From: Bugula neritina
Lineage: Eukaryota; Animalia; Bryozoa
NCBI GenBank assembly: GCA_964035545.1
Contig: OZ037770.1
Location: 2,822,662-2,886,661, forward strand
Direction: 5' to 3'
Length of the DNA stretch: 64,000 nt
A program made the position numbers and the translations under genes. The notes beneath the pieces were generated by a model, which saw only the letters and a list, made by a program, of their open reading frames with translations, ran no database searches and had not been told where the DNA came from. Of this stretch, positions 94 to 12,000 are shown one piece after another; within the stretch, counting starts at the first letter, position 1, and each line of letters opens with the position of its first letter.

Positions 94-3000
94 GTAAGAG
101 GGCTGAATGGACAGCTGGCAGAGCTTTCTGGAGACAGAAGTCGAATTGAGGAAAGACTCAACACTCTGCAGAAGTCAATGACCGAGGTTGAAGAGGACAA
201 GAGAGGTCTTGGTAAGTTGTTTTACTGTTTCAGTTTTTTTTCAATTTTAGGTTATGGTTGACACCAGAATCTTGACCAACCTAACAAGATTGTTAGAAAT
301 GACCAAACTTGTAAGATTGTGATAAATAGTCTAGTGATAGAAATCAACTTTTAGTTTCACGTTTTGTAGTATTATTATTCATAAATATTTGTTGTATAAT
401 AATTCTTCGCACAAGAAATGGTGTCTGTATGCGTTATTGGTAATCTTGTACTTTGCGATGTTAAAGGAATCTGATTGGTTACTTTTTATTCTGCAGACGG
501 CAGATTTGCCAGTGCACAGACTGCATTGATGCTGCAAGAGGAGACAATCCGACGTAATGAGCGGGAAAGGAAGGTTATGACTGATAAACTGACAAACCTG
601 GAGAGATCATTGAATGCCTCAGAAAGTGAGAAGAAGCAGCAACAGGATAGAATCATCAAACTCAAATCGGTGAGTGATTACCTGATAGATTTAGAAACAT
701 GGTTAGTTTTTTGATAAAAGAAAATTGAAAGTATGCTTTAATGTTAGAAAAATTTCATGTAGCTTTTTTTTAGAAGTAGCCTGACTTATAACATATAAGT
801 TATACTTTTTTATCCAAACACAAGTGATTCAAAGATAAGTTTGAGTTTTAGTGAGTCGAAGTGATTTAAATCACGTGATTGTTTGCATTTTTCACTTTCA
901 AATAGAGATATTCCAGCAAGTCTACTCCTCGCAAGAGAAAGGTAGGGTGACAATGTAGTGACCTCCAGTAGTCACCTTGACCTTTGTAGGACCTTTGCAG
1001 TCGATTATTTCTCTCACTGATGCATGTCATACAAATAGCTGTCTGATAGGTTTGTTGTTATCTCTCTACACACTCTTCAGCATGAGTTGAATCACCTGCC
1101 TGCATGTACTGAGCTGAGCCAAACAGGTTTGATATTGCATAGTCACACGGCTTCAATGGTGTTGTGTGAGTTAGTCGATGTAACAAGCATCTCTATTGGC
1201 TGGAGATATATATGTCACTCGTGCTGTAGGACATTGCTAAGATGGAGGAGGACAAGAAAGCATTGAGATCTTCGCTGGAAGATGCAGAGAACAGGTGCAC
1301 AAAGCTGGAGCTGACGAAGAGAGCACTGGAAGGAGACATACAGAGGACGAAACTGGTTCTTACAGACAAAGATACGGAAATGCAGGCAAGTGTCGTCTCA
1401 TCATTTGCTTGATTCTGTGTTTATTAAACTATTTTTAGTTACAAATGATATTAATTCTCCATGTTTCAGGTGTTGCACGAGAGAATAGAGAACTTAGCCC
1501 GACAAACTCAAGAGATGGAGGGACGTAACCAAAGCCTCCAACTCACAGTCGATAGACTGTCACTCACCCTGGCTAAAACAGAGGAAGAGGAATCGGCTCA
1601 AAAGGTACCTATAGACTGAGGCCCAAAGGAGACGTCTTGTTTATTAGTTCAACTTTGCTATTTTAGTTGATCGTTGAGTTATTTCTGGACTCACAACTTT
1701 TGATTGCTATTGTGATTTTGCTGAAGAGTTAAAAGTAGCTTAATGCTAGTTTTATGACAATAGAGGGGTTTCAAACATCCCTCTAGAGGAATTTGTATTT
1801 TAAAGTTGTCTCCCCCTACAGGTATTGGGGGCAGTCTCAATGATATATAGAAGGCCCATAAAATCAGTAGAAATGTAAGGTTTGAGTGAAGACTATTACT
1901 AGTGTATGTTTCATTTTTTCTGAGATTGATATTTTGGCATAAGCACACATATGAGCAGTTTCAGAATTTTTTTAAAAAATTTTGTTATTGATAAATTTCA
2001 GAAAAAGAAAACTTCAAAGCATATTTGTGGTTTTGATTATTGAGCAAATCTGAAGCTGGCAGCTGTCATATTATCATTTGTTTTGCTGGCTGTAACCAGC
2101 CTGTTTAGAGCTGCTATAACCTTTCAACTCTTAGGACAATAATAACATGCTCCTACGCTATATAGCTGCACTAGTGGGCTCTGTCTTACTGACATCCAAA
2201 TGCTCCAAATTATGGGTTGGAACACATGCCTGCACATGCCACATAAAGGCACTGGCTCATTTGTATTAACATGTTCACTACTTACAACACTTATACTATG
2301 AAAATAACTAAGCCACCCTACTATCTAATATTTCTATCAAAAATAAAGATATGTATTAAAACAGATAGATTAAACTTGTAATTTTAAACAGTATCTTATC
2401 TAAAAATTCCAAACACTGTATAACTATATATATGCTTTATAAGCATATGTTTCCATGGCATGCCTGCAAGACAATGAAAATATTTAGAGAACAGTAAAAA
2501 GAAGCATATAAATTTCAGAATAGTTTCTTTTTTCCTGAGATGAATATTATGGAAATGTCCCACAATTCAACATTTAAATTAAGTCTGTAAAATAATTTTC
2601 ACAGTGTATTTTCAATACATAATTATTTTTGCAAGCTAGTTTGTGTTTGTTATGGTATGCCATTTTACAGTGGCTTAGTTAACTAGGTCAAAGTTCATTC
2701 AGCAGTGCAATGCAATTAACCCAACACACTTCCATTGTACACATTAGCAAACAGGTCAAAGTTTAATTCCGGTGTAATGTGGCACCAGTCCAGCTGCCCA
2801 GACTTTAGGAATTTGTAAACACTTGTTCAGTTGGTATAGTATCAAACAGCAATGCCTAACCGTGCTTGCTCTGCATACCTATGTACAAACAATTCAAAAA
2901 AACTACTACAGTCTAAAAAAGAGCTTTGTTCAGTTCATCATAAACTCAAAGGTAAATAAATCATTATTTTATTCATATTTGATTATGGAAACGAACTTAA

Positions 3001-9000: not shown

Positions 9001-12000
9001 TGTTCCAACCCATAATTTGGAGCATTTGGATGTCAGTAAGACAGAGCCCACTAGTGCAGCTATATAGCGTAGGAGCATGTTATTATTGTCCTAAGAGTTG
9101 AAAGGTTATAGCAGCTCTAAACAGGCTGGTTACAGCCAGCAAAACAAATGATAATATGACAGCTGCCAGCTTCAGATTTGCTCAATAATCAAAACCACAA
9201 ATATGCTTTGAAGTTTTCTTTTTCTGAAATTTATCAATAACAAAATTTTTTAAAAAAATTCTGAAACTGCTCATATGTGTGCTTATGCCAAAATATCAAT
9301 CTCAGAAAAAATGAAACATACACTAGTAATAGTCTTCACTCAAACCTTACATTTCTACTGATTTTATGGGCCTTCTATATATCATTGAGACTGCCCCCAA
9401 TACCTGTAGGGGGAGACAACTTTAAAATACAAATTCCTCTAGAGGGATGTTTGAAACCCCTCTATTTGAAGTTAACTAAAAATATTTAATTATGTTTTCT
9501 CTGTGATTTTCAGAAATTATGATAAAAATTTAATCAGCTTCATTGATAAATTATGTCAAGTAATTCTCATCATTTTTCTTGCTCTCATTTTCATATGGAA
9601 TCACTCACTCTTCTCACTTAATTATTCCTTTGCTCTTTTAGAAACTTATTCACTCACTGTCTTCTTTACTTTCTTCATCTACTCACTTACTCACTCAATC
9701 ACTCACTCACTCATCCACTTCCACCCCTCCTCTCTGTGACTATCACTATGGTGACTCCTATTAAGGTGACTCACACTGTTACTAAGGTGACTCACACTAT
9801 TACTATGGTGACTCACACTATTACTATGGTGACTCACACTATTACTATGGTGACTCACACTATTACTATGGTGACTCACATTATTACTGTGGTGACTCAC
9901 ACTATCACTGTGGTGACTCACACTATTACTGAGGTGACTCACACTATTACTGAGGTGACTCACACTATTACTATGGTGACTCACACTATCACTGTGGTGA
10001 CTCACACTATTACTATGGTGACTCACACTATTACTGTATTACACAGGACAGAGTACAGAGTCTCAACATGTCCCTGTCAGAAAGTACGGCTGCTATCGGA
10101 GAGTTGCAGGAAAGAGTTCAGCAGTTACAGAGAGCTCTGACCAGCTCGGAACACGATAGGAGAGTGTTGCAAGAGAGACTCGACACTACCAGGTAACACT
10201 TGATACTCTCTACTGTAATGTTACCAGGTAACACTAAATATTGTATATGCTAATGCTATTCACTGGTGCCACATGCATTTGTGCTTTAAGAATAATTATT
10301 ATTACAATTACTTATACTGCTTGTCATCATAATCGCCCTTAAGAACATTATTGATAAGTGTTCACTTCTCAGCTGTACTGAGATTGACAGAGTGCGACTG
10401 TAACAATGTTAAATGAATATGGCTAAGCAAATTAGCAGCAGTGATCTAATTGGCTGATGACTGTTTAGCTTGTCCATTTTGCAGTTTTAGTTTTATATTT
10501 TGATTCCAATTTATAATTGTCCATTATTACGATAAGCGAGTGAGATTTCAATATTATAGAATTTTTAACCAGGTGGTTAAGCTATTTCCAAACACAATTG
10601 ATCACTTGGAGCTTTACTCTTGATGATAACATATTGCAACGTATTTTTATACGGTTTCACTTGAAATTTGCTTCCATGTTATTTGTGTGACTGTAAGAGT
10701 AGCAGTGTGACTGTTAGTGTGACTGTTAGTGTGACTGTAAGACTGATAGAGTGACTGTGAGAGTGATAGCATTAGTCGAATACCGAAGCTGATTGGATGA
10801 AACTTAGCCTAAGTTCTCTCTCCTAGACAAGCTCAGAACGACACGAAGAAGCAGAACCACTCGCTGATTGAGAGAGTCCAGTCACTGCAGGCGGAGCTAC
10901 AAGACAGTGAAGTCAGGAGGAACGAGTTGGAGGGGCAAGTTAGACAGAGTCATACGGTAAGTGCGTACTAGTGTAAGTACATGCAGTGTAAGTACATGCA
11001 GTGTAAGTACATGCAGTGTAAGTACATGCAGTGTAAGTACATGCAGTGTAAGTATATGCAGTGTAAGTATATGCAGTGTAAGTATATGCAGTGTAAGTAT
11101 ATGCAGTGTAAGTATATGCAGTGTAAGTATATGCAGTGTAAGTATATGCAGTGTAAGTACATGCAGTGTAAGTATATGCAGTGTAAGTACATGCAGTGTA
11201 AGTATATGCAGTGTAAGTATATGCAGTGTAAGTATATGCAGTGTAAGTATATGCAGTGTAAGTACATGCAGTGTAAGTATATGCAGTGTAAGTATATGCA
11301 GTGTAAGTATATGCAGTGTAAGTACATGCAGTGTAAGTACATGCAGTGTAAGTACATGCAGTGTAAGTATATGCAGTGTAAGTACATGCAGTGTAAGTAT
11401 ATGCAGTGTAAGTACATGCAGTGTAAGTACATGCAGTGTAAGTATATGCAGTGTAAGTATATGCAGTGTAAGTATATGCAGTGTAAGTATATGCAGTGTA
11501 AGTACATGCAGTGTAAGTATATGCAGTGTAAGTACATGCAGTGTAAGTATATGCAGTGTAAGTATATGCAGTGTAAGTATATGCAGTGTAAGTATATGCA
11601 GTGTAAGTATATGCAGTGTAAGTATATGCAGTGTAAGTATATGCAGTGTAAGTATATGCAGTGTAAGTATATGCAGTGTAAGTATATGCAGTGTAAGTAT
11701 ATGCAGTGTAAGTACATGCAGTGTAAGTACATGCAGTGTAAGTACATGCAGTGTAAGTATATGCAGTGTAAGTATATGCAGTGTAAGTATATGCAGTGTA
11801 AGTATATGCAGTGTAAGTATATGCAGTGTAAGTATATGCAGTGTAAGTATATGCAGTGTAAGTACATGCAGTGTAAGTACATGCAGTGTAAGTACATGCA
11901 GTGTAAGTACATGCAGTGTAAGTACATGCAGTGTAAGTACATGCAGTGTAAGTATATGCAGTGTAAGTACATGCAGTGTAAGTACATGCAGTGTAAGTAT

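Follow-up and report, generated by a model that had tools for sequence, protein, structure and literature searches.

Structure of the element

The window analysed here, a 64,000-nt stretch of the Bugula neritina genome (assembly GCA_964035545.1, contig OZ037770.1, positions 2,822,662 to 2,886,661), contains a transposon of the ISL2EU type that carries two genes between terminal inverted repeats (TIRs) of about 1 kb. The original prediction, made from the letters alone, was of a 7702-bp element with inverted repeats of ~992 bp making up about a quarter of its length, an AT duplication and two convergent, intron-containing genes. Exact alignment bears out the outline: the arms are reverse complements across 997 bp, broken only by a mismatch at arm position 993, so that 992 bp are perfect, and the two TIRs jointly account for 25.9% of the 7,702 bp. 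No internal tandem sub-repeats of note were seen in the TIR. The features are listed in window coordinates, where ORF2 stands for the second open reading frame, TSD for target-site duplication and 'RNA contigs' for contigs assembled from probable RNA runs, in which some DNA is possible.

1762–9463: whole element, 7,702 bp, ISL2EU-type, two genes
1760–1761: left TSD, AT (target A|AT|T), adjoining the left TIR
1762–2758, + strand: left TIR, 997 bp, first bases AGAGGGG
1762–1784, + strand: imperfect terminal hairpin of the TIR (RNAfold −10.4 kcal/mol), lost in some subfamilies
1805–1833: subterminal motif GTTGTCTCCCC, common to the related loci L077 and L086
2852–2951, + strand: transposase exon 1; start codon 94 bp inward from the TIR edge; carries the first half of THAP (CxxxxC)
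2952–3512, + strand: transposase intron 1, between exons 1 and 2
3165–3340: (TA)n microsatellite in transposase intron 1, of varying length among copies
3513–4392, + strand: transposase exon 2; remainder of THAP, linker, start of HTH_Tnp_4
4393–5042, + strand: transposase intron 2, 650 bp, GT..AG
5043–5723, + strand: transposase exon 3; DDE_Tnp_4 core with motifs IIDCSE, LADRGF and IHVER
6083–6861, − strand: ORF2 exon 4; YqaJ / lambda-exonuclease domain
6862–7145, − strand: ORF2 intron 3, spliced in RNA contigs
7146–7295, − strand: ORF2 exon 3 (linker)
7296–7528, − strand: ORF2 intron 2, spliced in RNA contigs
7529–7716, − strand: ORF2 exon 2; second SWIM half (CNH)
7717–7808, − strand: ORF2 intron 1, splitting the SWIM finger
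7809–8413, − strand: ORF2 exon 1; SAP domain, conserved region, first SWIM half (CSC); start codon 54 bp inward from the TIR edge
8467–9463, − strand: right TIR, 997 bp
9464–9465: right TSD, AT, adjoining the right TIR

The motif GTTGTCTCCCC overlaps an inverted pair of sites that resemble the THAP consensus TxxGGGx(A/T), and this subterminal region may be where the transposase binds.

The two genes and their transcription

Domain searches were run for each exon and the exons were never joined; exon coordinates come from splice signals, and by arithmetic an intact transposase would have ~553 amino acids (aa) and ORF2 573 aa. In the transposase the THAP (E=3.9e-7, 31.2 bits) and DDE_Tnp_4 (E=4e-41, 140.7 bits) matches lie above the cutoff, and the weak HTH_Tnp_4 match (17.7 bits), in a domain split by an intron, falls below it. 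The YqaJ match of ORF2 has E=4.6e-15 and its SAP match is weak, just below the cutoff. The SWIM motif CxC...CxH is interrupted by intron 1, the position of which is conserved in five related loci. In the window copy the transposase lacks one C at 5229/5230, a point absent from the original prediction; the loss shifts the frame inside the DDE domain, after the first catalytic D and before the second. This C is present in both other full-length copies (C3 and C5) and in all four sequencing runs, and its loss is either a homopolymer assembly error or a private lesion of the window copy.

Both genes are transcribed and spliced, and the predicted pair of convergent, intron-containing genes is confirmed. 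Transposase intron 2 is spliced in contigs X9 and X10; exon 1, which is conserved in relatives, is joined to 3510-3513 by loose ends of RNA contigs. ORF2 introns 2 and 3 are spliced, and in the RNA contigs that cover intron 1 we saw no splicing of it. Its retention stops translation after 202 aa, upstream of the nuclease domain, and could be regulated splicing comparable to that of the P element third intron, or a contig artefact. RNA contigs also cross the 3′ ends of both genes (5109-6477), which suggests overlapping 3′ untranslated regions and possibly double-stranded RNA.

Both start codons lie <100 bp from the inner TIR edges, RNA contigs extend to these edges, and one contig continues ~290 nt upstream of transposase exon 2, by which it would enter the left TIR. 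The TIRs of this family thus probably hold the promoters of both convergent genes. The same observations would fit a view in which the long TIR is a duplicated promoter whose arms are kept alike by selection, in the manner of maize MuDR. MuDR has two convergent genes transcribed from long TIRs; it differs from the window element in its Mutator transposase, a 9-bp TSD and the lack of an exonuclease. However, in a second family of this genome (1,075-bp TIRs) and in the related locus L071 (~560 bp) the genes are divergent with their 3′ ends towards the TIRs, so a promoter role cannot account for long TIRs in general, and gene-less 2.87-kb copies homogenise their arms as well. As an account of the long, similar arms we regard this view as very improbable.

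The product of ORF2 is likely an active 5′→3′ double-strand exonuclease, judging from its residues and its predicted fold. The model of the last exon (predicted local distance difference test, pLDDT, 93) has the lambda-exonuclease fold (Foldseek E=4e-10 to 3sm4), and lambda exonuclease and LHK-Exo are the best matches by sequence and by structure alike. Residues W59, R63, S70, E116, D156, E170, K172 and Q201, among them those for catalysis and 5′-phosphate binding, are invariant in 21 homologues; they align to W24, R28, S35, D119, E129 and K131 of lambda exonuclease. The full YqaJ-family motif set is present: the PD-(D/E)xK core, motif I Glu, PD, ExK, QxQ and the 5′-phosphate-binding W/R/S. 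The SAP/SWIM exon 1 is well conserved (53–64% identity), its model is poor (pLDDT 56) and finds no match in the PDB, and in Atlas it falls only into unnamed SAP and SAP/SWIM clusters, with no annealing-protein partner found.

Copies of the family in the genome

The terminal 28 bp match 117 times in the 216-Mb genome, which corresponds to ~55–60 copies, mobilised in trans. Among the 38 copies with both ends in hand, AT stands on both sides in all 38, preceded by A in 35 (position −1) and followed by T in 35 (position +1). Paralogous empty sites hold a single AT; this settles the predicted AT duplication and rules out a Spy-like insertion without TSD, in which the AT would belong to the TIR. The element is a real cut-and-paste transposon, well defined and classifiable. 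An empty allele of the window locus, which had been proposed as a check, is absent from the assembly, as expected for a unique intron.

The commonest copy is a non-autonomous 2.87-kb form, ~90% identical to the window copy, with arms of ~883 and ~941 bp flanking a 1-kb piece of the transposase gene; its deletion junctions show 3-4-bp microhomology. Dozens of other copies, mostly of this form, carry long arms, and the long TIR is therefore a trait of the family and not an artefact. Copies are recent, 0.4–2% apart, with the interior of the window copy ~0.4% from C3, and offer few substitutions for a comparison of nonsynonymous and synonymous rates (dN/dS). C3 has lost 4 bp of the DDE exon and 571 bp of one arm; in C5 a stop codon interrupts transposase exon 3 and YqaJ is frameshifted.

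Two derivatives stood out. In the left arm of L055 (alignment columns 408-443) a short duplicated motif, also present close by in the TIR, stands in place of ~36 bp, resembling a local template switch. A 3.1-kb derivative (L035:1520-3040) contains a 1.5-kb internal palindrome (85% identity) and 372-bp arms.

The arms are homogenised within copies

We compared the arms of 28 copies of the 2.87-kb form and found them to be homogenised within copies. The left and right arm of one copy differ by 1.3%, versus 2.4–2.7% between copies (cores 2.6%), and own pairs show 269 mismatches versus 541 ± 24 with shuffled partners. Doubleton alleles fall in both arms of one copy in 38 of 56 cases, where chance would give 1.8%, and 77 of the 89 alleles found on left and right arms are fully nested within the same copies. 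In an arm tree, left pairs with right for several older copies, L051, L054, L070 and L057 (support 98–100). Of the arm mutations private to one copy, about half have undergone conversion, and longer branches carry more conversions (rho 0.62). Seven copies that form a recent clade nonetheless retain 7–13 left-right differences across at least six jumps: homogenisation is not obligatory at each jump. A terminal tract is visible in L061, the left arm of which carries its own right-arm alleles at sites 48–114 and not from 168 on.

That the 1-kb repeat or the identity of its arms might stem from assembly, polishing or a local inversion had to be considered, as the evidence from the runs consists of contigs only. 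We find this scarcely credible. Alleles present in both arms define subfamilies and are inherited by sets of 6–10 separate copies, so assembly polishing cannot be their source; the same structure recurs at dozens of independent loci with different flanks, and the TIRs are found in other samples and species too (L083, L071, L073, L077). The long TIRs at other copies, loci and samples rule out a local inversion, and the genome-wide search upholds the proposed long-TIR family; none of the outcomes named beforehand as refuting the prediction turned up.

Since arms copy mutations into each other, their identity (window arms 0.1% apart) overstates youth and is no clock, and TIR identity cannot date such elements. 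Of the young long-TIR lineage suggested by the original prediction, the recent copies stand. The lineage itself reaches further, as long TIRs are also present in relatives with 56–62% identity and in the second family at 47%, and the arm identity on which its youth had been based is inflated by conversion.

A second family and related loci

A second ISL2EU family resides in the same genome, its DDE 47% and its YqaJ domain 38% identical to those of the window family. Its copies are 9.25–9.29 kb long, with divergent genes, an AT TSD and many 2.1-kb derivatives of their own. The TIRs of 1,075 bp are 99.7% identical (L084:731-1805; L085) and bear no similarity to the window TIRs. With at least four full-length copies that have open DDE and YqaJ exons, this family is more likely than the window family to hold an intact element. 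One copy is located at:

G000 C7:6554030-6563318: second-family copy L085, 9,289 bp

Long-TIR relatives share 56–62% identity with the window family in the DDE domain, and their TIRs measure ~560 bp (L071), ~365 bp (L077/L078) and at least 266 bp (L073). Those of L073 and L078 are collapsed at contig ends, and such short-read collapse may explain the short catalogued ISL2EU TIRs. The readable TIR ends of the window family, the second family and L077 all start with AGA. The ends of L086 gave only a degenerate inverted match, and no TIRs were found for distant relatives (Hydractinia, Sycon, L089–L091), whose loci are broken or incomplete. In a quick tree of unnamed homologues the window transposase falls in a 51-member clade with outside relatives (Shimodaira–Hasegawa-like approximate likelihood-ratio test, SH-aLRT, 99). 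The Bugula genome (G000) also holds dozens of related DDE_Tnp_4 genes (47–50% identity) without a nearby YqaJ match, which makes them a natural comparison set for TIR length and conversion in the absence of the nuclease.

Role of the exonuclease

On balance we favour, somewhat beyond even chances, a reading in which a long-TIR ISL2EU element uses its nuclease to resect breaks at the donor site while host recombination copies the arms. The THAP-DDE transposase would bind the ends, excise the element and insert it at A|AT|T through cuts staggered by 2 bp, as is usual for the family. The lambda-type 5′→3′ exonuclease, tethered by SAP/SWIM, would then resect the donor-site break and channel it towards homologous gap repair that uses the sister chromatid as template; this step, taken alone, we judge at about even, with a slight lean in its favour. 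Gap repair would restore the element at the donor site, and copy number would rise. Internal deletions and arm-to-arm copying would be by-products of gap repair within a 1-kb inverted repeat, the copying being done by host recombination occasionally and not with each jump.

Several points weigh against this reading. Sharing between arms is ~0.5 in the outer 600 bp versus 0.25 in the inner 260 bp, a bias that could reflect end-initiated, element-driven events, although sites in one tract are not independent of each other and the non-matching inner boundary may explain part of the gradient. All three full-length copies (window, C3 and C5) are lesioned in the assembly and none is intact, so present activity of the window family cannot be claimed. 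Finally, the literature we found holds no paper that tests the job of the ISL2EU exonuclease and no biochemical or genetic evidence on its substrate.

The original prediction had offered homogenisation of the TIRs as one possible job of the nuclease. In the version considered here, the enzyme would degrade a single strand, either of the element after excision or at an end cut only once; the strand left over would fold into a panhandle through the 1-kb TIRs, and mismatch repair would act before reinsertion. The homogenisation itself proved real, strong and biased to the outer arms, L061 has its clear terminal tract, and long TIRs accompany ORF2 in two unrelated families here and in three relatives. 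However, the seven-copy clade kept its differences unerased, part of the gradient may have the origin given above, ISL2EU families with TIRs of 6–148 bp carry YqaJ too (PMC4482050 Table S2), and long TIRs exist without exonuclease in Spy (PMC4122938), PIF/Harbinger and Galileo (PMC3573991). The nuclease is quite unlikely to drive homogenisation by this route; if it did, the element would mend its own ends via a phage-type recombination step undescribed for DDE transposons. Because jumps can take place without homogenisation and short-TIR families have the exonuclease as well, host recombination is the likelier cause. It is likewise unlikely that the nuclease exists for the sake of long TIRs, because short-TIR families carry YqaJ and Galileo has long, exchanging TIRs without a nuclease.

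Alternatively, the nuclease could trim ends or remove flanks in the transpososome, as Cas4 does for Cas1-Cas2; it would then be required for clean ends and be unrelated to TIR length or conversion. ORF2 belongs to the same fold family as Cas4, a lambda-like nuclease was recruited by another DDE group, KolobokE (PMC9587614), and PIF/Harbinger transposition requires a second protein (PMC9179366). Yet the nearest structures are not Cas4 but lambda and LHK-Exo, exonucleases that act processively on double strands in the 5′→3′ direction, a related transposase is enough for Spy to transpose (PMC4122938), and the genome contains the many DDE-only relatives mentioned above. Trimming is a possibility we hold to be unlikely. 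In favour of donor-site resection or against it, the question of the exonuclease is directly testable in this genome, where two recent families have spliced transcripts and copies that are nearly intact, along with dozens of non-autonomous copies that carry natural marks.

Host gene and neighbourhood

A long + strand gene of the coiled-coil type (exons within window 1-1602 and 10086-15000) hosts the element in one of its introns, and its pre-mRNA would carry a 1-kb perfect hairpin from the TIRs. The exons of this gene may resemble rootletin (CROCC); searches gave generic coiled coils only. A 21-bp minisatellite lies 270 bp downstream of the element (9735-10035), and the next host intron contains a ~1.6 kb array of a 14-bp tandem repeat (10960-12570) that yields spurious ORFs of 530–580 aa. 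Arrays of a 29-bp unit occur in both orientations at 18667-18983, 38973-39247 and 49880-50279. Copies of a dispersed repeat are found at 13291-13482, 20311-20721, 31500-31788 and 57351-57481; elsewhere the 2.87-kb copy L037 sits inside this repeat, and the copies in the window served as empty sites.

Comparison with known systems

By the published definition, which rests on the TSD, the transposase domains and the second ORF (PMC4482050; PMC9179366), the window element is an ISL2EU element of the PHIS superfamily from a long-TIR lineage. It has the AT TSD in A|AT|T, the THAP/HTH/DDE_Tnp_4 transposase and the YqaJ second ORF, and an animal host, in keeping with its spliceosomal introns, the 216-Mb genome and the symbiont and bryozoan (BRYA) samples from which holders and relatives come. 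The ISL2EU/IS4EU elements of Han et al. 2015 (PMC4482050; ISL2EU-15_CGi, IS4EU-1_BF, ISL2EU-5_HM) have the same THAP, HTH_Tnp_4 and DDE_Tnp_4 arrangement (~550 aa), a separate YqaJ ORF of ~570 aa, the same TSD and animal hosts. In contrast, their mean length is 4.8 kb compared with 7.7 kb, and arm homogenisation was measured in the window family. The catalogued TIRs span 6–259 bp, and 6–148 bp in YqaJ-carrying families (PMC4482050), as against 997 bp here, and the AGA start departs from the usual GG. Kilobase TIRs extend the known ISL2EU range about fourfold and define a wider lineage; Repbase may already hold long-TIR ISL2EU families.

Galileo of Drosophila likewise has a THAP-type transposase. 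It belongs to the P superfamily and shows TIRs of 0.3–1.2 kb, many two-TIR deletion derivatives and proposed arm exchange (PMC3573991, PMC4168063), but unlike the window element it has a 7-bp TSD, internally repetitive TIRs and no exonuclease. KolobokE is a DDE transposon with a lambda-exonuclease-like nuclease of unknown role (PMC9587614), whereas in the window element the nuclease has a gene of its own on the opposite strand and the transposase is of the DDE_Tnp_4 type.

Within the superfamily comparable TIR lengths are already known. Spy, a sister PHIS group, has TIRs of 9–1,474 bp without sub-repeats that repeatedly expanded and contracted (PMC4122938); it inserts at AAA|TTT without TSD and has one ORF and no exonuclease, whereas the window element duplicates AT and has two ORFs. 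PIF/Harbinger shares DDE_Tnp_4 and the two-ORF layout, and rare families reach TIRs of 1,042 bp (PMC4482050), but its TWA TSD and Myb/SANT second protein are both absent from the window element. What is new here is the measured homogenisation of arms within copies, which provides a clean count of arm-to-arm exchange in a DNA transposon, a process that had earlier mostly been proposed, as for Galileo.

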